From assembly GCA_965637545.1 (NCBI GenBank), contig OZ281495.1:13950001-14014000 (forward strand): 64,000 nt of DNA, in the 5' to 3' direction. Origin of the DNA: Phallusia mammillata (taxonomy: Eukaryota). The notes beneath the pieces were generated by a model that was not told the origin of the DNA, searched no databases, and saw only the letters and a list, made by a program, of their open reading frames with translations. Both the position numbers and the translations under genes were made by a program. Every line of letters begins with the position of its first letter. Position 1 is the stretch's first letter. This document shows positions 18,804 through 56,698 of the stretch, piece after piece.

Positions 18804-21800
18804 TTCTAAGCAATCCATACCTAATAAAAGTGATGTCTGGATTTTGGTATTGATTTATGCAAAATAATCTGTGGAGTCAAGAACCAGTATTTATTATACA
18901 CTGACCAGCGGAGTCAGTTTTGGATAGCCCGCAATATATATAGAAAGAAAGGTTTTGCTTGATCCATTAAACACGGAAGTTATTTTCCCCAACCTGCGAT
19001 GACTCCCAGCAGCCGTTCTTCTGGAATATTCTTTACAGGTGGCCTAAACTTTCTACTCCCAAGTTAGTGCATGAAACGTCGAAATAAGGAAAGCTCTGAA
19101 AAAGCAGTTTATGCAGTCTCTGTGAATATTACAAGTGTCAACGCAGGCCTAACTAGAAAATTCAGGTGAAAACTGGCGAAAAGAAGTCTTCAGCCCAAAA
19201 TGCGCAATAACTCTGTAGTTTTTTTTTGGAAAAAACGGCGTTGTGTGTAAAAAAAAAATGTTTGTGTAGTTGTAGAAGTGTCCATAAGCACTGCAGGGCT
19301 CGGGTTCTGAGCAGTTGTGAAGATTTGTTCGAATTTGTTTGATATGTATTGTACATTGATGCCTTTGAATGTAAATAGTTAAAAAATTACGTCACGTTTC
19401 AGCACGGGTAAAACTAATGGCGTACTATTCTTACCTAGTATAAACATGTCCCGAGTATAGGCTGCTGATGTGGGTTTGAATGTTATAACAGGCCTAATTT
19501 TTTTTATCCTACGGCTCCCATATGGGTTGGTGACCGGTTGATTCCTATAACGCCTTCAAAAAGCTTAGCTAGGATTTGTATATGAGTGTGCCGTGTGTGT
19601 GAATGTTTTAGGACTAATCCTACTCATGAATTTATGTTCTTCCTAACATGTACCATACTATCATAAACAACAATGCTCTTGAAAATACGACAATAAATGT
19701 ACTCAATAAATACTGAGGCTGGCATATTGACTGTTTTTCAGGGTTTAAATGTTTTTAATGTGTACCATCCTCAAATACTAAACAAAGTTTGATACTGTGA
19801 AGAGCACTTTTTTGCACTGGAAGAACAACGCAGATTATCAGAAACGATGCAGGCAAAACTGAGTAAGTTTGAACAAAGGGAAGCAAAACCAGGAAGTTGG
19901 GGATTCATCGCAAGCTTTTGCGCTGACGAAGCACCGAAGTTTTTTTTTTTTAAAAAGCTAAAACACCTCTGCCGATTGAGCTTATTTACAAAACTTCCTG
20001 TTTTGGCCTGAACTGCTTTTCAAATTTGTTTGAAACTATAGTTCTTTAATAATCATATGTAAGCACGGTTGAAGTTGTACTAACGACCAATAACAAGAAA
20101 ATCTATTTTATTTCACTTTACAAAAAAAAGAATGTTTTTAACGTGGGTTCGGTGCATTAATACAAGGTACCGATCACAATGCAAAACCATAAAGTAGCAG
20201 AATATTCAGCAATAACATGTAAATTAATGTAACTTATAGTTTACAAAAGCAGAAAAATGAAGATGATAAACTAGACCCACAGGATATTTTTAGCTGCTAA
20301 CTAATAATGTAAATTGTAAATAGGTACCTCAACCTGCGACAATAGAATTCTAGACAATAAAATCAATATTGCATTTTCCTAATAAAAACGAATTTGTTAC
20401 CTCACTTTTTTAGAAAACGAAGAAGTTACTCTGGCAACGGAATTAAAAGCCGCGTGTGATTCCCAAGGTATAGAAGTAGATTTGAAAAAATCTTCGTCCA
20501 TTTTTTTGCAACTGGGAAATGTTTACTACCAAAAGTTTTCTAACAACTCGGATCTCACTACGGCGAGATTTGATGCCCTCCGAAGTGCTGCCTTGTACCA
20601 AGCCGTACTGCAAAGATCAGGTCCGAATTCAGATATCAACAAAAAAGCAACCAAAAAGTTACACACATTGTATGGGGCAATATTATCTTCAATTGACTTT
20701 AAAGAAAGTGATACTAAGGTTGAATCGATTGTAAACTCTGCCAAACTAATGTTACGAAAGATGCGAGTGACATTAGAGTTGCAATTTAACAGAATAAAAA
20801 TACCATTTAAAACTTATTCGCAAATCACAAGGCAACAACTGGCCAAATTTTGTGACAAAATGGAATCGTACCAAAATGATGTTTCAGATCATTTTACAAA
20901 ACTTATGAAATACATTTTTGATCACTGCTCAACCTTTGCTGGTGAACCGCCATGTTCGTTTGCTGTGTTGGGTTTGGGATCCCTGGCCAGACTTGAGGTC
21001 ACACCTTTTTCTGACTTTGAGAGCATGCTCGTGTTGGAAAACCAAGCGAAAGTCGACGAAACCGTCAGGAACTACTTTCGAAATTATGCGATGCTGGCGC
21101 ACCTCATCGTCATAGGATTGGGAGAGACCATTCTCCCAGCAATGGCAATACCGTCCTTAAACGATTTCCAAACAGATGGTGGCGACTGGTTTGTTGATTT
21201 GGTTACTAAGCGCGGTCTCTCATTTGATGGTCTCATACCGCATGCCTGCAAGAATCCGCTGGGAAGACTGCCAACGAAAAACAAACCTTGGCACACAGAG
21301 CTCATACAAACTGTCGACAATATGTTGCGGTTTGTTGACGTAGACATTGAACTGAAAGAAGGGTACCATTTAACGGAGATAATTTCGCAGTCAGTTTATG
21401 TGGCCGGTGGGGACAAAAATGGACACCCGTCCGGAAAAAGCGTAGGAACCACTTTTCAAAACCTTGTGTGGAACAAACTTTCACAAAAAACGAAATCACC
21501 TGAGGACAGACAGAAAACCATCGCAACTTTAAACGAGGACATAAGAATATACAACTTTCAAAACCTTAAACATGGCCAATCAGTCAATGTTAAAAAAGAC
21601 TTGTACAGGGGAATCACTATTCTGCTTCCCAGATTGGCCATGTTATTTGGAATTAAAAGAAGTTCCTCTTACGATATTCTCCGTGGCTTACGCACCATAA
21701 ACATGATTGATGATGAATATTGTACCGATCTCCGAACAGCAGTTGCTATTGCCAATTTCTCCCGTGCCAAGACGTACTTTGACAAAGGTGCTCAATGGGA

Positions 21801-23008
21801 CGCATTAGCTGGTGGTAAGTCTTGTTTTGCCAAGAAGAAACAGAGAAATGTTTTAGAGACCGTTTCTTTGAAGGCACTGCAGCATTTATTTTGCGTCGGA
21901 ACAGAGTTTCAATCATCCATTGTTACATCGTTAAAAGGCAGCGACAAATTCGAACCTTTAACAAGATCGGGGAAAAAACTTACCCTCGGCAGTGTGCTTT
22001 TTCGATTTGAAGAGTACGATCAAGCCATTGCGTTTTTTCACGAGCAATTACAAAATCTTGCTAAAACGGAACAAGGTCATTCAACCGACATGTCCGATAC
22101 CCATTTGATGCTGGGAAGATGCTTTTATAGTAAAAGTCAGCACGAGATTGCGTGTCGCCACTTTAACGAAGCCGAAAGGTTTTGTGAAGACAACAAATGC
22201 TTTGCCATGGGACGAATCCTGCTATTTCGAGCACTTAGTGAAAGAAAATTACGAGGAGCGGACACTGTTAACAGCCTGATGAAACGTGCTCACGAATTTT
22301 TCATTCAATCAAACTCTTCTCTGTCCAGCGATGAAGGAACCTACAGCGCACAGTCTTTTGTTGAAACGCTTCAGGAACTCTGTCGAGAAAATTCTGATTT
22401 AGTACCTGAGTTGATCGAGGTAATGGTCATAACGGGCGACCGTTTCTTACAGGAAAGCAAGTCACCGTTTTTAGCTCTTCAGCAGTACGAAACAGCGGCA
22501 TTTGAAATGGAAAAGTACTACAAGGATGACAGGCATATTTTGCTTAATTTGTATGTAAAAGAAGCAATAGCCGTGTGCCAAGGGGGCCTTGGCCAATACG
22601 ACAAGGCCGTAAATACATGGCTCGAAGTAATTGCAAGAACCAAACAATTACCACTCGAGGCTATCGATGACATCTCATTTAAACGAGGTTTCAAGCCCCA
22701 CGATTCTCTGATAAACCATTTGCCAAAAATCAAACTTGCCTTATTTGGATTAAAGAGTCACGACAAAGCAATTGTCGATTGTGGTTCTATCGTCAGGTTG
22801 ATTAATAATTTGGCCGAGAGTACAAGGAAGTATAGCTTGCTTTCTCGCATTCAAGCACGGGTATACGATATACTAGGAGAACTTTACGAACGGGACAACA
22901 TGTACGATAAAGCAATTGACAGCTACGCTCTGGCAAGATCCAACTTTAGACGGTTGTATCAACAAACTAACTTTACAACGGAATCGAAACTGAATCGCTG
23001 TTATTTCA

Positions 23009-23548
23009 CGGCTGATCTGTGAGTGTTGTTGGATGTTAGAACTGATTGCAATTCTGTTACTTCAGAAGGGTTTCTGGCATAAGTGCATATCCCGTATTTG
23101 TCATGGCAGACTTTTGAAATAAGAGTGTATCCTGGTATTCGGGTCTTTGATTCCGGTGATGTTGCTGTAGCGTGGGTTTCTTGGAGTAATGCGATGTCGA
23201 CTCTGTGTTGTTGGAGGATTTTCCCAAGATATTCGCATTTGGGCATTGAACTTCCCTCGATGTTAAGTGAAAGGATCTTTGTCTGGTTGCGGAATTCAAT
23301 GGAGCCTAACTTATTTTTCGAACCTGCTGGGCTCTGTAGGTTGTCAGCAGGAACGCGAACGTTTTTATTCTGGGCCACGTTCGATCCAGCATTTTGTTTC
23401 ATTTCTTTGTAAAGCATCATAGTAAGTAAGGTAGTAGAGAGACGTGTACCCAGGATGGCGCGTTGCCGTTTGGGTACCGGGTTGGACTCGATCTTAGTGA
23501 TTGTAAGCCCCTACACCAACGACAAGGTGTCGAGTCCCTTCGTAGGGG
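23009..23548 (-). mobile_element. 5' fragment of an Ingi/Vingi-like non-LTR retrotransposon (5' UTR plus start of AP endonuclease)
   Basis: Minus-strand ORF from 23420 has ILSLNIEG...VDIALLQETH...IPGY...HDKYG (APE motifs). Absent from copy B, where 101 bp of host exon (53946-54046) occupy this position. The clade assignment is from memory of APE and 5'-end style. Confidence 0.8.
23484..23548 (-). ncRNA. HDV-like self-cleaving ribozyme (L1Tc/ingi-type) at the element 5' end
   Basis: Minus strand: P1 CCCCUAC/GUAGGGG, P2 GGACUCGA/UCGAGUCC, P3 ACC/GGU, L3 UUGUCGUU, a single-bp P1.1 (G-C), and J4/2 CUAAGA. The nested pseudoknot topology is complete. Confidence 0.75.
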
Positions 23549-26500
23549 TTGGATTTACTAAACTGCTACAAAGTAGTAAAGGATTGCGTACTACTTAAAG
23601 AATTACTGGATGCTGTCTCTTTACTGCTGACATTGCTAAAGAAGTCTGACGACAACTCGGATATCATAACAGCATTTTTTAATCTATTGGTTGGAATTAC
23701 AACATTAAACCGCACGGAAGTAAGCAAAGTTATAACTCTTCTTAATCGAGCAGCGTTTCATTTCTGGCGACAACCTGCTGAGGATTTTGCAAGATTAGTA
23801 GAAAGGGCAACTGCTTTAGTCTGCAGAACGGAAACACTCGATGTAAAGGAGTTTGACAGTTTTCTGTGTAAATCTGTTGAAAAAATCTTGAAGATATCTC
23901 CTCGATTGGCCTTTAACAGGCAGACGACTATGATGATACGAAAAACTCTAGAAACCATTGGTAATGAAAGACAATACCCTACCTGGTGCATTCCCGAAGA
24001 TCACATTAATCTGCGAACAGCATTGATCAACTATTGCACAAATATAGGTGATGTATCCGATGCCTTGGAAGCATTGGAGCCAACGTCACCAAGAGGAGGT
24101 AAATCGGTGTTTTTTCTCAGACTCTCGGCAGCCGAATCCCTCAGAAAGGACGAAAAGCTTTCAGAAGCAATGTTCGCTTGCAACTTGGCGTTAACAACCG
24201 TTGCTGACATTACATCTATTTCGCACTCTGAAAGGGATTTCTTACATGCCAAGGCAATGTCGTCGATCGCACGAATTTTTGCTGAACAAAATCAAACTGG
24301 GGCGGCTTACCGTGCTTGTAAACAATCCATTGACTTTCTACGATCGCTTCCAATCAAGCACGAATTCGCAGTTGACCAGTACATAGCACTGTTGTTTGAC
24401 GTAGCAGAGATGAGTAAGGCGCTGGGCGTAACTTACGAATTTTACTACCACGGCCAAGCTTTGGTCGGTCAAATCGCTTCTTTGTCTTTAAACCATACAA
24501 ACAATACAAATTTGCTGTTGCTTTTGGAAATTACAAACCCGTTGTTTAGCGAGCTGCAAACAGTTACATCAAGTCAACTTCAACTTCTTCGTAAAGTCAG
24601 TCAGTCGCCGGCTTTCATTAATTGGAGGCATCAGGGTAATGAAAAAGCGGCAGTAGACCTGGTTTCAGTCTTGCTTACACGCATTTTTACAACTTTCAAA
24701 TACCTGTCAGAAGATGTCAACCCCGAACCTCTATTTAAAGCATTACGGGACACCATTGAGCACGATTTGATTCCGTGTGCTAAACTTCCAAGCAAGGAGG
24801 AAACGCAGGTCAGTTAAACATAATCAACACTAAATACCAGGGCTACTTAAATAATGTTGTCAATGGTCCACAAGCGAAAGGTACAAATCAACGAGCTCCT
24901 TTTTGTGCTAGCACTTCAAGTTGATGGCGGTTTGAGAGCGACGAAAATTTTCGTTGCGATTTGATAGGAGATGTCATTTTTGTTTGTCTTTAATAGTTTG
25001 AACTCGCCGAATTGAAGAGGTTTCTAATTTGTTTAAGTTTGGTTCCCAGGTTATTGGCACAACATTGGCAAATTTCAGATTTGTTTTAGGATTAGTTGGA
25101 TATCGTAGTTCTATGTCTAAGGGCTTATATTTTTGTTTCTAGATCAGGGACTTTTAAGCCTCCTTTATTTTTTTACATCAACCATCTGTAAAAGTTTCAT
25201 CCAAAAACATCAAACATTTTATTGAACAAAAGAGGGTGAACAAACTGCAGGAAACAAAACAACAAAACATATCGAGTAACAATCAAAATATGTCCCCTTC
25301 CCACCGTAAAGGCCTGCAAACAACCTATAAATTTTTTGGTGTCTGTAACTTATGCCACAGCACAAAGTAAACATTTATTTGCATTGTAGGCTATATGCAG
25401 CCATACTATTTCTGTTACTTTCTTAAGTGTATAAAATGACTTTCGGTTGTACCTTTGTGGATTCAAACCAACGCGTTTTGCAGGAGTCGGTCCGCGTTCT
25501 ATCACAGAAAATTCCAGTGATGAAGTTCATCGAAACGCAACTAATCGTGGCGACAATGTACAAGAGAGCTGGTCGTGCGTCAGACTCCAAAATTTGGTTC
25601 AAAGCAGCGTTGAAAGATATTCAAAGCAATGAACCAATTTATTCCCACATCAGCAAGAGGTGCATATTTAATTTGTTACGGGATTAAAAGTTTTGCATGT
25701 GTGAAAATTTTCGAGGTCTTCGAGCAAAAATGCCTAACTTCACCATGTTTATGTATGACTTATCCCGCTTAACCTAAACCCGACTCTTCAATGTTTTTTT
25801 TTTACTTAACAACTTCCGAAAGTGTGTCAAGATTAACTTTAGTATTATCTTATATAGTTACACACAATGTCTGATGGGCCTCAGCTGGTGCGGCATGGAG
25901 TTGAAAAAAGTCGACAAAGCTTGGGAGCACTTGATAACGGCATTTGAGGTGTCTTTAAGAGTCGCCAACGACACATCGCGACATTTGGAGATGACAAGCA
26001 TTTGCCGGACGGAAACACGCACGAAGCAAACCTGGGACGATGCCATGTCCTATTTGACCGACTTTACAGAAGTTAAAGCCATTTGTAGTGACTTAAAACG
26101 ACGGAGAAGCACGACAAAAAAGCGGTTTCAAGTCGGTGCTGAAACGAGCCGAAGCAAGTCGTTTGTGGTATTAAGACCGTCGTGTGTCAAGTAGTTACAA
26201 TATTTCGATTGAAAATTGTCACGCCACTTACTTGTTTCCTTAAAATGCAACACAAGCAAACCTGCCAGATTTGTTTATTCGACTGTCGAAAGTAGTAAGA
26301 AACCGTTCCTTAAAATTTTGTTTTAAGTTGTTTACATATCATCTATTTCCAAAAAAATACGACTCAAACGCATGCTCTATTGGCTTTACACTGCGTACTG
26401 TTGTGTTTGATTAAAATGCAAAACCTATTTTCATGCTATCACGTTTTTGCAACATGTCATACCTGTTTAAATATGTTACACTGTTTGCATATTTAGTTGT

Positions 26501-50790: not shown

Positions 50791-53700
50791 ATGCAGGCAA
50801 AACTGAGTAAGTTTGAACAAAGGGAAGCAAAACCAGGAAGTAGGGGATTCATCGCAAGCTTTTGCGCTGACGAAGCACCGAAGTTTTAATAGGCTAAAAC
50901 ACCTCTGCCGATTGAGCTTATTTACAAAACTTCCTGTTTTGGCCTGAACTGCTTTTCAAATTTGTTTGAAACTATAGTTCTTTAATAATCATATGTAAGC
51001 ACGGTTGAAGTTGTACTAACGACCAATAACAAGAAAATCTATTTTATTTCACTTTACAAAAAAAAAGAATGTTTTTAACGTGGGTTCGGTGTATTAATAC
51101 AAGGTACCAATCACAATGCAAAACCATAAAGTAGCAGAATATTCAGCAATAACATGTAAATTAATGTAACTTATAGTTTACAAAAGCAGAAAAATGAAGA
51201 TGATAAACTAGACCCACAGGATATTTTTAGCTGCTAACTAATAATGTAAATTGTAAATAGGTACCTCAACCTGCGACAATAGAATTCTAGAAAATAAAAT
51301 CAATATTGCATTTTCCTAATAAAAACGAATTTGTTACCTCACTTTTTTAGAAAACGAAGAAGTTACTCTGGCAACGGAATTAAAAGCCGCGTGTGATTCC
51401 CAAGGTATAGAAGTAGATTTGAAAAAATCTTCGTCCATTTTTTTGCAACTGGGAAATGTTTACTACCAAAAGTTTTCTAACAACTCGGATCTCACTACGG
51501 CGAGATTTGGTGCCCTCCGAAGTGCTGCCTTGTACCAAGCCGTACTGCAAAGATCAGGTCCGAATTCAGATATCAACAAAAAAGCAACCAAAAAGTTACA
51601 CACATTGTATGGGGCAATATTATCTTCAATTGACTTTAAAGAAAGTGATACTAAGGTTGAATCGATTGTAAACTCTGCCAAACTAATGTTACGAAAGATG
51701 CGAGTGACATTAGAGTTGCAATTTAACAGAATAAAAATACCATTTAAAACTTATTCGCAAATCACAAGGCAACAACTGGCCAAATTTTGTAACAAAATGG
51801 AATCGTACCAAAATGATGTTTCAGATCATTTTACAAAACTTATGAAATACATTTTTGATCACTGCTCAACCTTTGCTGGTAAACCGCCATGTTCGTTTGC
51901 TGTGTTGGGTTTGGGATCCCTGGCCAGACTTGAGGTCACACCTTTTTCTGACTTTGAGAGCATGCTCGTGTTGGAAAACCAAGCGAAAGTCGACGAAACC
52001 GCCAGGAACTACTTTCGAAATTATGCGATGCTGGCGCACCTCATCGTCATAGGATTGGGAGAGACCATTCTCCCAGCAATGGCAATACCGTCCTTAAACG
52101 ATTTCCAAACAGATGGTGGCGACTGGTTTGTTGATTTGGTTACTAAGCGCGGTCTCTCATTTGATGGTCTCATACCGCATGCCTGCAAGAATCCGCTGGG
52201 AAGACTGCCAACGAAAAACAAACCTTGGCACACAGAGCTCATACAAACTGTCGACAATATGTTGCGGTTTGTTGACGTAGACATTGAACTGAAAGAAGGG
52301 TTCCATTTAACGGAGATAATTTCGCAGTCAGTTTATGTGGCCGGTGGGGACAAAAATGGACACCCGTCCGGAAAAAGCGTAGGAACCACTTTTCAAAACC
52401 TTGTGTGGAACAAACTTTCACAAAAAACGAAATCACCTGAGGACAGACAGAAAACCATCGCAACTTTAAACGAGGACATAAGAATATACAACTTTCAAAA
52501 CCTTAAACATGGCCAATCAGTCAATGTTAAAAAAGACTTGTACAGGGGAATCACTATTCTGCTTCCCAGATTGGCCATGTTATTTGGAATTAAAAGAAGT
52601 TCCTCTTACGATATTCTCCGTGGCTTACGCACCATAAACATGATTGATGATGAATATTGTACCGATCTCCGAACAGCAGTTGCTATTGCCAATTTCTCTC
52701 GTGCCAAGACGTACTTTGACAAAGGTGCTCAATGGGACGCATTAGCTGGTGGTAAGTCTTGTTTTGCCAAGAAGAAACAGAGAAATGTTTTAGAAACCGT
52801 TTCTTTGAAGGCACTGTAGCATTTATTTTGCGTCGGAACAGAGTTTCAATCATCCATTGTTACAACGTTAAAAGGCAGTGACAAATTCGAACCATTAACA
52901 AGATCGGGGAAAAAACTTACCCTCGGCAGTGTGCTTTTTCGATTTGAAGAGTACGATCAAGCCATTGCGTTTTTTCACGAGCAATTACAAAATCTTGCTG
53001 AAACGGAACAAGGTCATTCAACCGATATGTCCGATACCCATTTGATGCTGGGAAGATGCTTTTATAGTAAAAGTCAGCACGAGACTGCGTGTCGCCACTT
53101 TAACGAAGCCGAAAGGTTTTGTGAAGACAGCAAATGCTTTGCCATGGGACGAATCCTGCTATTTCGAGCACTTAGTGAAAGAAAATTACGAGGAGCAGAC
53201 ACTGTCAACAGCCTGATGAAACGTGCTCACGAATTTTTCATTTAATCAAACTCTTCTCTGTCCAGCGATGAAGGAACCTACAGCGCACAGTCTTTTGTTG
53301 AAACGCTTCAGGAACTCTGTCGAGAAAATTCTGATTTAGTACCTGAGTTGATCGAGGTAATGGTCATAACGGGCGACCGTTTCTTACAGGAAAGCAAGTC
53401 ACCGTTTTTAGCTCTTCAGCAGTACGAAACAGCGGCATTTGAAATGGAAAAGTACTACAAGGATGACAGGCATATTTTGCTTAATTTGTATGTAAAAGAA
53501 GCAATAGCCGTGTGCCAAGGGGACCTTGGCCAATACGACAAGGCCGTAAATACATGGCTCGAAGTAATTGCAAGAACCAAACAATTACCTCTCGAGGCTA
53601 TCGATGACATCTCATTTAAACGAGGTTTCAAGCCCCACGATTCTCTGATAAACCATTTGCCAAAAATCAAACTTGCCTTATTTGGATTAAAGAGTCACGA

Positions 53701-56698
53701 CAAAGCAATTGTCGATTGTGGTTCTATCGTCAGGTTGATTAATAATTTGGCCGAGAGTACAAGGAAGTATAGCTTGCTTTCTCGCATTCAAGCACGGGTA
53801 TACGATATACTAGGAGAACTTTACGAACGGGACAACATGTACGATAAAGCAATTGACAGCTACGCTCTGGCAAGATCCAACTTTAGACGGTTGTATCAAC
53901 AAACTAACTTTACAACGGAATCGAAACTGAATCGCTGTTATTTCAAGGGGGGGTATTATTTGAAAGCTGTTCAGAATTTCAAACATTACCTTACAGAATG
54001 CTTAAGAAAGTGTTCCCCTATTAACGAGAACGCAATTCAAATTCTTTTGGATTTATTAAACTGCTACAAAGTTGTAAAAGATAGCGTACTACTCGAAGAA
54101 TTACTAACTGCTGTCTCTGGACTGTTGACTTTGCTAAAGAAGTCTGACGGCAACTTGGATATCATAACAACGTTTTTCAACCAACTAATTGGGATTACGA
54201 CATTCACCAGCACGGAATTAATCAAAGTTATAACTCTACTCAAACAAGCAGCGTTTCTTTTTTGGCGACAACTTGGTGAGTATTTTGCAAGATTAGTAGA
54301 AAGGGCGACGGCTTTAGTTTGCACAACGGAAACCCCCGATATAAAGGAGTTTGCAAGTTTTCTGTGTAAATCTGTTGAAAAAATCTTGAAGATGTCTCCC
54401 CAACTGGCCTTTAACAGACAAACGACTATGATGATACGAACCACTCTGGAAACCATTGATACTGAAAGAAGACAATTCGCTATTTTGTGTGTTAGCGAAA
54501 TGGAAGATCACATTTATCTGCGAACAGCATTGATCAACTATTACACAAATATAGGTGATGTATCAGATGCATTAGAAGCATTGGAGCCAACGTCACCAAG
54601 CGGAGGTAAATCGGTGTTTTTTCTCAGACTCTCAGCAGCCGAGTCCCTCAGAAAAGACGAAAAGCTTCCAGAAGCAATGCTTGCTTGCAACTTGGCGTTA
54701 ACAGCCGTTGCTGACATTACATCTATTTCGCACTTTGAAAGGGGTTTCTTACATGCCAAGGCAATGTCGCCGATCGCACGAATTTTTGCTCAACAAAATC
54801 AGACAGGGGCGGCTTACCGTGCTTGTAAACAATCCATTGACTTTCTACGATCGCTTCCAATCAAACAGGAATTCGCAGTTGACCAATACATAGCACTATT
54901 GTTTGACGTAGCAGAGATGAGTAAGGCGCTTGGGGTAACTTACAAATTTTACTACCACGGCCAAGCTTTGGTCGGTCAAATCGCTTCTTTGTCTTTAAAC
55001 CATACAAACAATACAAATTTGCTGTTGCTTTTGGAAATTACAAACCCGTTGTTTAGCGAGCTGCAAACAGTTATATCAAGTCAACTTCAACTTCTTCGTA
55101 AAGTCAGTCAGTCGCCGGCTTTCATTAATTGGAGGCATCAGGGTAATGAAAAAGCGGCAGTAGACCTGGTTTCAGTCTTGCTTACACGCATTTTTACAAC
55201 TTTCAAATACCTGTCAGAAGATGTCAACCCCGAACCTCTATTTAAAGCATTACGGGACACCATTGAGCACGATTTGATTCCGTGTGCTAAACTTCCAAGC
55301 AAGGAGGAAACGCAGGTCAGTTAAACATAATCAACACTAAATACCAGGGCTACTTAAATAATGTTGTCATTGGTCCACAAGCGAAAGGTACAAATCAACG
55401 AGCTCCTTTTTGTGCTAGCACTTCAAGTTGATGGCGGTTTGAGAGCGACGAAAATTTTCGTTGCGATTTGATAGGAGATGTCATTTTTGTTTGTCTTTAA
55501 TAGTTTGAACTCGCCGAATTGAAGAGGTTTTTAATTTGTTTAAGTTTAGTTCCCAGGTTATTGGCACAACATTGGCAAATTTCAGATTTGTTTTAGGATT
55601 AGTTGGATATCGTAGTTCTATGTCTAAGGGCTTATATTTTTGTTTCTAGATCAGGGACTTTTAAGCCTCCTTTATTTTTTTACATCAACCATCTGTAAAA
55701 GTTTCATCCAAAAACATCAAACATTTTATTGAACAAAAGAGGGTGAACAAACTGCAGGAAACAAAACAACAAAACATATCGAGTAACAATCAAAATATGT
55801 CCCCTTCCCACCGTAAAGGCCTGCAAACAACCTATAAATTTTTTGGTGTCTTTAACTTATGCCACACAAAGTAAACATTTGTTTGCATTGTAGGCTATAT
55901 GCAGCCATACTATTTCTGTTACTTTCTTAAGTGTATAAAATGACTTTCGGTTGTACCTTTGTGGATTCAAACCAACGCGTTTTGCAGGAGTCGGTCCGCG
56001 TTCTATCACAGAAAATTCCACTGATGAAGTTCATCGAAACGCAACTAATCGTGGCGACAATGTACAAGAGAGCTGGTCGTGCGTCAGACTCCAAAATTTG
56101 GTTCAAAGCAGCGTTGAAAGATATTCAAAGCAATGAACCAATTTATTCCCACATCAGCAAGAGGTGCATATTTAATTTGTTACGGGATTAAAAGTTTTGC
56201 ATGTGTGAAAATTTTCGAGGTCTTCGAGCAAAAATGCCTAACTTCACCATGTTTATGTATGACTTATCCCGCTTAACCTAAACCCGACTCTTCAATGTTT
56301 TTTTTTTACTTAACAACTTCCGAAAGTGTGTCAAGATTAACTTTAGTATTATCTTATATAGTTACACACAATGTCTGATGGGCCTCAGCTGGTGCGGCAT
56401 GGAGTTGAAAAAAGTCGACAAAGCTTGGGAGCACTTGATAACGGCATTTGAGGTGTCTTTAAGAGTCGCCAACGACACATCGCGACATTTGGAGATGACA
56501 AGCATTTGCCGAACGGAAACACGCACGAAGCAAACCTGGGACGATGCCATGTCCTATTTGACCGACTTTACAGAAGTTAAAGCTATTTGTAGTGACTTAA
56601 AACGGCGGAGAAGCACGACAAAAAAGCGGTTTCAAGTCGGTGCTGAAACGAGCCGAAGCAAGTCGTTTGTGGTATTAAGACCGTCGTGTGTCAAGTAG
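50791..56698 (+). pseudogene. NTase-TPR gene, copy B, two in-frame nonsense codons
   Basis: The large exon 51351-55315 has no insertion. It has CAG>TAG at 52817-52819 and CAA>TAA at 53243-53245 relative to copy A. The repaired model is ~1,497 aa. Confidence 0.82.

Follow-up and report, generated by a model that had tools for sequence, protein, structure and literature searches.

How does a retrotransposon come to start at exactly the same nucleotide beside quite different host DNA? The question is raised by a LINE remnant on the minus strand of the window (the whole 64,000-nucleotide stretch of Phallusia mammillata DNA that was analysed), whose first 65 nucleotides can be drawn as an HDV-like self-cleaving ribozyme. 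Is this fold more than a lucky match at the end of a repeat? Is it kept in intact copies and in related elements? Would it cut? The explanation that best accounts for the data, and that we regard as very probable, is a 5'-terminal HDV-like ribozyme whose predicted self-scission 5' of C1 sets the start of the LINE RNA.

The fold and the element it opens

Read on the minus strand from 23548 to 23484, the RNA would be CCCCUAC-GAAG-GGACUCGA-C-ACC-UUGUCGUU-GGU-GUAGGGG-CU-UACAAUCA-CUAAGA-UCGAGUCC (features in Table 1). All 18 pairs of P1, P2 and P3 (7 + 8 + 3) are canonical, and with P1.1 they make up a nested double pseudoknot in which P1 and P2 cross. The two marks of HDV-like ribozymes that can be read at the sequence level, a catalytic J4/2 cytosine and the U...CG core of L3, are both in place. 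By structural definition this is a real HDV-like ribozyme, from which we infer catalysis. The initial annotation had given the same sequence and the same helices, including the one-pair P1.1, and had remarked on the near-absence of P4; each of these points is borne out. Where P4 would stand, between J1/4 and J4/2, eight unpaired nucleotides are found and no helix. The canonical G1.U37 wobble at the cleavage site is absent as well, the window ribozyme and its four closest relatives having C1-G41. Nested folding of the segment gives a competing structure of -18.4 kcal/mol, no better than that of shuffles (z = -0.75); the energies of P1, P2 and P3, evaluated separately, add up to a rough sum of about -21.7 kcal/mol.

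Table 1. Features of the locus and of a second ribozyme set (window coordinates unless another contig is named)
Feature	Position	Strand	Remarks
HDV-like self-cleaving ribozyme (predicted)	23484..23548	minus	65 nt; would be cut just 5' of C23548
P1, 7 bp	23548-23542 with 23514-23508	minus	
J1/2	23541-23538	minus	
P2, 8 bp	23537-23530 with 23491-23484	minus	
Spacer C	23529	minus	
P3, 3 bp	23528-23526 with 23517-23515	minus	
L3	23525-23518	minus	UUGUCGUU, U...CG core
P1.1, single pair	G23523:C23507	minus	G26:C42 of the RNA
P4 remnant	23505-23498	minus	8 nt UACAAUCA, no helix; between J1/4 and J4/2
J4/2	23497-23492	minus	CUAAGA; candidate catalytic C at 23497 (C52 of the RNA)
AACCCGG box, then two-tier hairpin, then 5' UTR to ATG	23444..23483	minus	
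Hairpin outer stem GUACCCA/UGGGUAC	23477-23471 with 23452-23446	minus	inner stem GGC/GCC
LINE remnant	23012..23548	minus	first ~537 of 3,247 nt; 5' end exact; 3' junction within 23004-23014 (microhomology)
LINE ORF start	23001..23420	minus	ATG 23420; ~136 LINE-derived codons, N-terminal APE-type endonuclease
Host TPR-repeat / DUF294-like ORF	20482..24817	plus	interrupted by the antisense LINE remnant; parts 20482-23022 and 23549-24817
Paralogous 'empty site', 98 bp	53949..54046		the 23-kb copy has the LINE remnant in its place
62-nt ribozyme loci	L123:201-262, L126, L131-L144		e.g. C8:19045043-19045104, C5:90803-90841

Full-length copies of the LINE measure 3,247 bp and hold one ORF of 1,026 aa, in which Pfam recognises Exo_endo_phos, Exo_endo_phos_2, RVT_1 and, C-terminally, a zf-RVT/CCHC motif; RNase_H is not among the domains found. 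A UniRef 'Reverse transcriptase' entry of Phallusia mammillata matches the ORF with 100% identity. Copies finish in ...GACAAT(AT)n, and their target-site duplications are 11-12 bp long. But where exactly does the element begin? A genome search found at least 12 copies that open with CCCCTACGAAGG beside mutually unrelated upstream DNA, none of them extending further upstream, and in the window the similarity to the host paralogue starts again at 23549. Nucleotide 1 of the element is therefore the first C of P1, and the exact element/host junction that had been placed there (23548) stands. Over the first 545 nt, identity is 99-100% in seven or eight copies with a complete 5' end, and the 3' ends are ~100% identical in at least 16 copies; the family is young and has intact members, for whose full-length copies the ribozyme is a precise annotation marker.

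Directly after the ribozyme come an AACCCGG box and a hairpin, which are found in the same place in five related elements, with compensatory changes at 4 of 7 consensus pairs. The second 7-bp stem proposed earlier ahead of the ATG is accordingly real and conserved. Shorter relatives of the element occur too. Bipartite non-autonomous derivatives (L023, L020, L026 and L028), which have target-site duplications of their own, retain, besides the ribozyme and the hairpin, ~40-120 nt of 3'-terminal sequence; L023 is ~160 nt long and is flanked by the duplication GTGTTTTCAAA, and that of L020 is TACTTACAAAACC. L016 and L020 are other internally deleted copies of the LINE. The existence of these derivatives suggests that both element ends are what trans-mobilisation needs.

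To which clade does the LINE belong? Like Vingi, it has a single ORF with APE and RT and no RNase H; its length also lies in the Vingi range of ~3.1-3.3 kb (3,247 bp versus 3,128 bp for Vingi-2_Gav), and it has bipartite derivatives (PMC5786205). By architecture, size and derivatives it is thus a candidate Vingi-like element. The L1Tc/ingi clade is defined by an RNase H and a trypanosomatid host, neither of which applies here, and the Phallusia element falls outside it. More distant relatives of the ORF, at 31-32% identity, carry a PF00075 RNase H, as expected for an Ingi-like sister group. An assignment to RTE, which size and the single ORF would allow, was not adopted in view of the C-terminal CCHC/zf-RVT motif and of the RNase H in the next relatives. 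Bipartite non-autonomous LINEs have been described for Ingi, Vingi, RTE and R2 (PMC5786205). The same 2018 survey does not have Vingi among the ribozyme-bearing clades, though it notes its bipartite non-autonomous copies, and the literature searched yielded no link between Vingi and a ribozyme. Work is under way to adapt Vingi-1 for gene insertion, and its native 5' UTR is left in place (PMC13708176).

The window copy and its host gene

The copy in the window had been described as a LINE fragment, and rightly so, for the frame that starts at its ATG passes after the LINE-derived codons into host sequence and then stops. Its ribozyme is identical to that of intact copies; the copy is otherwise dead. 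How did it come to lie antisense in a host gene? The site can be compared with a paralogous one, as it is part of a segmental duplication ~31 kb apart, in which 20001-23011 matches 50937-53948 at 99.2% identity and 23549-26000 matches 54047-56504 at 95.4%. In the paralogous segment a single ORF (53348-55324) runs across the corresponding position.

The 3' tail and the second target-site duplication are both missing from the remnant at 23012..23548, and 98 bp of the host sequence are absent. Copies of LINE cDNA captured at a double-strand break are typically truncated at the 3' end, lack target-site duplications and come with a deletion of the target. The remnant could therefore have arisen by such an endonuclease-independent capture and not by later deletion, a history that we hold to be unlikely, if still a serious competitor. 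Against it stands the 5' flank, which reads cagTTT|AGTAAATCCAA and has a T-rich motif 11-12 nt upstream of the junction. Canonical insertions of the family, with their 11-13 bp duplications, have such a motif in the same position, which favours an ordinary endonuclease-primed insertion followed by deletion. Internally deleted copies are also found elsewhere in the family (L016, L020). Most likely, then, the LINE inserted normally into the TPR gene and lost the rest in a single deletion of ~2.8 kb, which would have taken away the 2.7 kb on its 3' side together with one target-site duplication and the 98 bp of host DNA.

The duplicated gene, which encodes TPR repeats and a DUF294-like nucleotidyltransferase domain, is broken at a different place in each copy: one has the LINE remnant (23012-23548), and the other's reading frame breaks near 52819-53348.

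Conservation, covariation and two ribozyme subtypes

How easily would such a motif turn up by chance? A strict HDV descriptor (7-bp P1, 3-bp P3, L3 T...CG, P2 of at least 6 bp, C in J4/2) has 23548..23484 as its sole match on both strands of the window (128 kb). Dinucleotide shuffles give 0.67 matches per window, or 0.08 when P2 must have at least 8 bp. By itself an HDV-type motif is only mildly to moderately improbable by chance, and its significance thus rests on its position and on its conservation in relatives. Looser descriptors had returned 396 and 188 matches in 392 kb with no plus-strand excess; they were dropped as too permissive and replaced by the strict one, which is anchored on the L3 motif.

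Searches with covariance models gave a divided answer. At gathering thresholds Rfam reports no ribozyme family for the window copy in a search of the whole window, and its HDV (RF00094) and CPEB3 (RF00622) models have no match at E <= 10 on 23380-23640. A leave-one-out model, trained on four metagenome relatives (the 5' half of each) and containing no Phallusia sequence, was run with filters off and has 23548..23506 as its only credible match in the window (32.8 bits, E 3.6e-5; the runner-up reaches 10.6 bits). The site that the initial annotation proposed to recover by descriptor or Infernal is therefore found by the strict descriptor and by the model of its relatives, and missed by the Rfam models.

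Proteins 32-54% identical to the LINE ORF are common in marine and host-associated metagenomes, and the contigs encoding them were fetched. Just upstream of related LINE ORFs, on the same strand, lie nine further ribozymes, which makes ten with that of the window. Across these ten, 169 of the 170 cells of P1, P2 and P3 are paired, and 16 of the 17 helix pairs occur as at least two pair types. The covariation looked for in P1 and P2 is thus present, with extensive compensatory change. When 3' strands are exchanged among the ten, pairing falls to 55% on average. The T...CG of L3 and a C 3-6 nt before P2' are found in 10/10. The paired fraction is inflated, as part of the ten were found with a descriptor that demands pairing; the ribozymes of L035/L036, L118 and L119, found via homology and by eye, are fully paired. 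The pair table comes from explicit segment parsing, MAFFT having put G-start and C-start ribozymes out of register, and it leaves out Logan contig L117 (protein P0005), which apparently starts inside the ribozyme.

The ribozymes fall into two groups. In the C-start group (n = 5), which is closest to the window element, L3 reads U-U/A-G-N-C-G, J1/4 is C and P1.1 is G-C. In the G-start group (n = 5) L3 reads U-N-C-A-C-G-U; four members pair the starting G with U and L044 has a G-G mismatch. J1/4 is G in 4/5 of this group, giving a C-G pair in P1.1; in L046 it is U, and a one-base register shift is needed to form the pair. Between the groups there is thus covariation of the tertiary P1.1 pair, G-C going with a C-start and C-G with a G-start. 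The Rfam CPEB3_ribozyme model (RF00622) scores G-start members at 55.6 bits (L072; the gathering score is 35), 25.2 bits (L100) and 31.9 bits (L120); the C-start group, with the window copy, is missed by Rfam.

What became of P4? The stretch from J1/4 to J4/2 is 8 nt long in the window element and 21, 72, 75 and 77 nt long in its four closest relatives; in the G-start group the P4 region takes up 11-41 nt. From these P4 regions of 11-77 nt in the relatives, it seems probable that the helix was secondarily lost in the Phallusia element lineage. In the RNase-H-bearing relatives L121 and L122 a clear 5' ribozyme was not seen: upstream sequence amounts to only 55 nt in L121, and in L122 the one candidate, a weak one, precedes the ORF by 490 nt.

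L072, L073 and L074 represent one locus, on metagenome contig JGI24159J19872_10030274, which holds a related LINE in a degraded state. The ribozyme (L072:3586-3659) stands ~290 nt upstream of the first residue of this LINE that aligns. Its match to the CPEB3 model has an E of 9e-13, and the sequences of P1, P2, P3 and L3 are near-identical. This single locus hints that the CPEB3 ribozyme may derive from the LINE clade of L072.

Phallusia has a second LINE family, whose 948-aa ORF is 38% identical to that of the 3,247-bp family. Its ribozyme (L120:5117-5211; C2:10327116-10327210) is an HDV-like, G-start fold of 95 nt with a P4. It scores 24.2 bits against the Rfam HDV_ribozyme model, beside its CPEB3_ribozyme score given above. 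Diverged copies of this family begin at the first G of the ribozyme.

Predicted cleavage, known counterparts and other ribozymes

How would the ribozyme fix the end of the LINE? A copy would be transcribed within a longer host or read-through transcript, in which the ribozyme would fold co-transcriptionally and the J4/2 cytosine C52 (23497) would catalyse scission just 5' of C1. This would release the element RNA with a precise 5'-OH end and with the ribozyme still on it, and full-length reverse transcription of the cleaved RNA would leave every complete copy starting at the same C beside unrelated DNA. Catalysis, its co-transcriptional timing and any role in translation or as a promoter are inferred here from sequence.

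Could the fold be conserved and no longer cut? It would then be a structured 5' UTR, acting as a binding site for an element protein, as a translation-initiation element or as an internal promoter, and the uniform 5' ends would come from transcription initiation at +1, which an internal promoter starting there could likewise yield. In HDV, loss of the G1.U37 wobble or of P4 can lower rates, and the window ribozyme has C-G in place of G.U and lacks P4. The silence of Rfam for the window copy fits such a reading too, and the conserved hairpin after the ribozyme suggests more 5' UTR functions. In L1Tc, the first 77 nt also act as an internal promoter (PMC3185411). Ribozyme and promoter functions are, however, not mutually exclusive. 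The same L1Tc ribozyme, which is also C-start with a single-pair P1.1, cleaves in vitro (PMC3185411), and natural P4-less HDV-like ribozymes are known (PMC10879173). Moreover, the nucleotides needed for catalysis (L3 U..CG, the J4/2 C and the covarying P1.1) are kept while the helix sequences vary freely, and a fold that has lost its catalysis is in our view improbable. The weakest alternative, a chance match to a permissive descriptor at a repeat end, can point to the matches in shuffled windows and to the hundreds that a looser descriptor finds, but it is effectively refuted by the comparative data, as the sole strict match in the window sits exactly on element nucleotide 1, the same fold recurs with compensatory changes in nine other related elements, and a model free of Phallusia sequence finds the site.

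A self-cleaving ribozyme positioned at the LINE's 5' end has a counterpart in L1TcRz/Pr77, and the resemblance to the L1Tc/ingi ribozyme pointed out in the initial annotation holds up. As reconstructed from printed primers, L1TcRz nt 27-77 reads ...UGGU GCCAGGG UC ... CUAAG CGCCUGCUG; its P1.1 is a single pair, and its cut, which is Mg2+-dependent in vitro, was mapped before C1 by primer extension (PMC3185411). Trypanosomatid ribozymes have flipped P1 GC pairs and a different P1.1 (PMC4035085). The Phallusia ribozyme likewise takes up the first ~70 nt of a non-LTR element and has a C-start P1 (CCC...) with GC pairs flipped relative to HDV, and it has in common with L1TcRz the GGU of P3', the CUAAG of J4/2 and the single-pair P1.1. 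Since L1TcRz is active without the G.U and is cleaved before C1, the cleavage-site wobble is typical and not obligatory. Bipartite derivatives that keep the ribozyme are found on both sides, NARTc, RIME and SIDER for L1Tc/ingi and L023 and L020 in Phallusia. The differences are that the Phallusia element resides in a tunicate and not in a kinetoplastid, lacks RNase H and is 3.2 kb long, and that L1TcRz has a short P4 whereas the Phallusia ribozyme has none. Promoter activity and in vitro cleavage have been demonstrated in L1Tc; the Phallusia ribozyme is known here from its sequence.

With CPEB3 (RF00622) and HDV (RF00094) the Phallusia ribozyme shares the double-pseudoknot topology, the 7-bp P1, the 3-bp P3 and an L3 of the form U-N-N-N-C-G, and its J4/2 cytosine is followed by UAA as in antigenomic HDV. 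It differs from them in having C-G and not G.U at the cleavage site, G-C and not C-G as P1.1, and no P4, and in lying at the 5' end of a transposon whereas CPEB3 and HDV ribozymes lie in an intron or a viral genome. For R2, R1, R4, RTE and LOA (Baggins), such ribozymes of the HDV-like kind are summarised in the 2018 survey from Eickbush 2010 and Ruminski 2011 (PMC5786205). They serve the role proposed here, freeing the element 5' end from a co-transcript and giving precise 5' junctions, and unlike the Phallusia ribozyme they have a G-start P1 and a P4 helix (PMC5786205). The lack of a P4 domain and a length of about 60-65 nt are shared with natural HDV-like ribozymes from metagenomes (drz-Mtgn; Riccitelli 2014) and with the theta ribozymes of phages (PMC10879173). 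The metagenomic minimal ribozymes come from the microbiome and the theta ribozymes, which act in tRNA processing, from phages, whereas the Phallusia one sits in a eukaryotic LINE.

The principle is not new, as HDV-like ribozymes processing LINE 5' ends are already known in several clades. What the locus adds is a well-supported case in a chordate (tunicate) LINE of Vingi architecture, a natural eukaryotic P4-less minimal variant whose relatives suggest P4 loss, a tertiary P1.1 pair that covaries across two ribozyme subtypes in one LINE clade, and a sequence-level bridge from LINE 5' ribozymes to the mammalian CPEB3 ribozyme. A wider reading, which we put forward tentatively and find rather doubtful, is that a 5' HDV-like ribozyme is ancestral to a metazoan Vingi-like (Ingi-related) LINE clade, where it would exist in a C-start 'L1Tc-like' and a G-start 'CPEB3-like' form with P1.1 and cleavage-site pairs reciprocally flipped. 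If this were true, the mammalian CPEB3 ribozyme would be the exapted 5' end of such a LINE, and Phallusia would have re-used the minimal C-start form outside LINEs, in at least 40 copies in a ~1.8-kb repeat near chromosome ends.

These further P4-less, C-start ribozymes (at least 40 in the genome; covariance model R1, 34-39 bits) are 62 nt long and read CCAUUGC-G-UGGGUUGA-C-ACC-UUGACGU-GGU-GCAAUGG-CUU-UUAAAC-CAAGA-UCAACCC. By eye, their P1 and P2 covary between subfamilies. They do not lie at a LINE 5' end; each follows a conserved three-hairpin RNA of ~100 nt in which 7/30 pairs are compensatory, so that a cut by the 62-nt ribozyme would fall directly 3' of this structured RNA and would define its 3' end. 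A ~1.8-kb repeat encloses several of the copies sampled, and the six 5-kb stretches checked contained no long ORF. Most of the ribozymes are located at a distance of ~30-800 kb from a contig end, and nearly all of these are oriented to face it. At C6:3302138-3325769 (L130) a perfect tandem repeat of 5,202 bp, with units 100% identical, carries in each unit one minimal ribozyme module in minus-strand and a 243-aa ORF in plus-strand orientation. On the reverse strand of L126, at 1888-2091 and 2147-2352, lies a ~205-bp element that recurs at many dispersed sites with 97-99% identity and is adjoined by a 53-bp inverted segment; it probably represents a young family of SINEs or MITEs.

The window also contains a vault RNA gene at 650-758 on the plus strand (Rfam RF00006, 59.2 bits, E 8.7e-11), which is full length and ends in a T-run.
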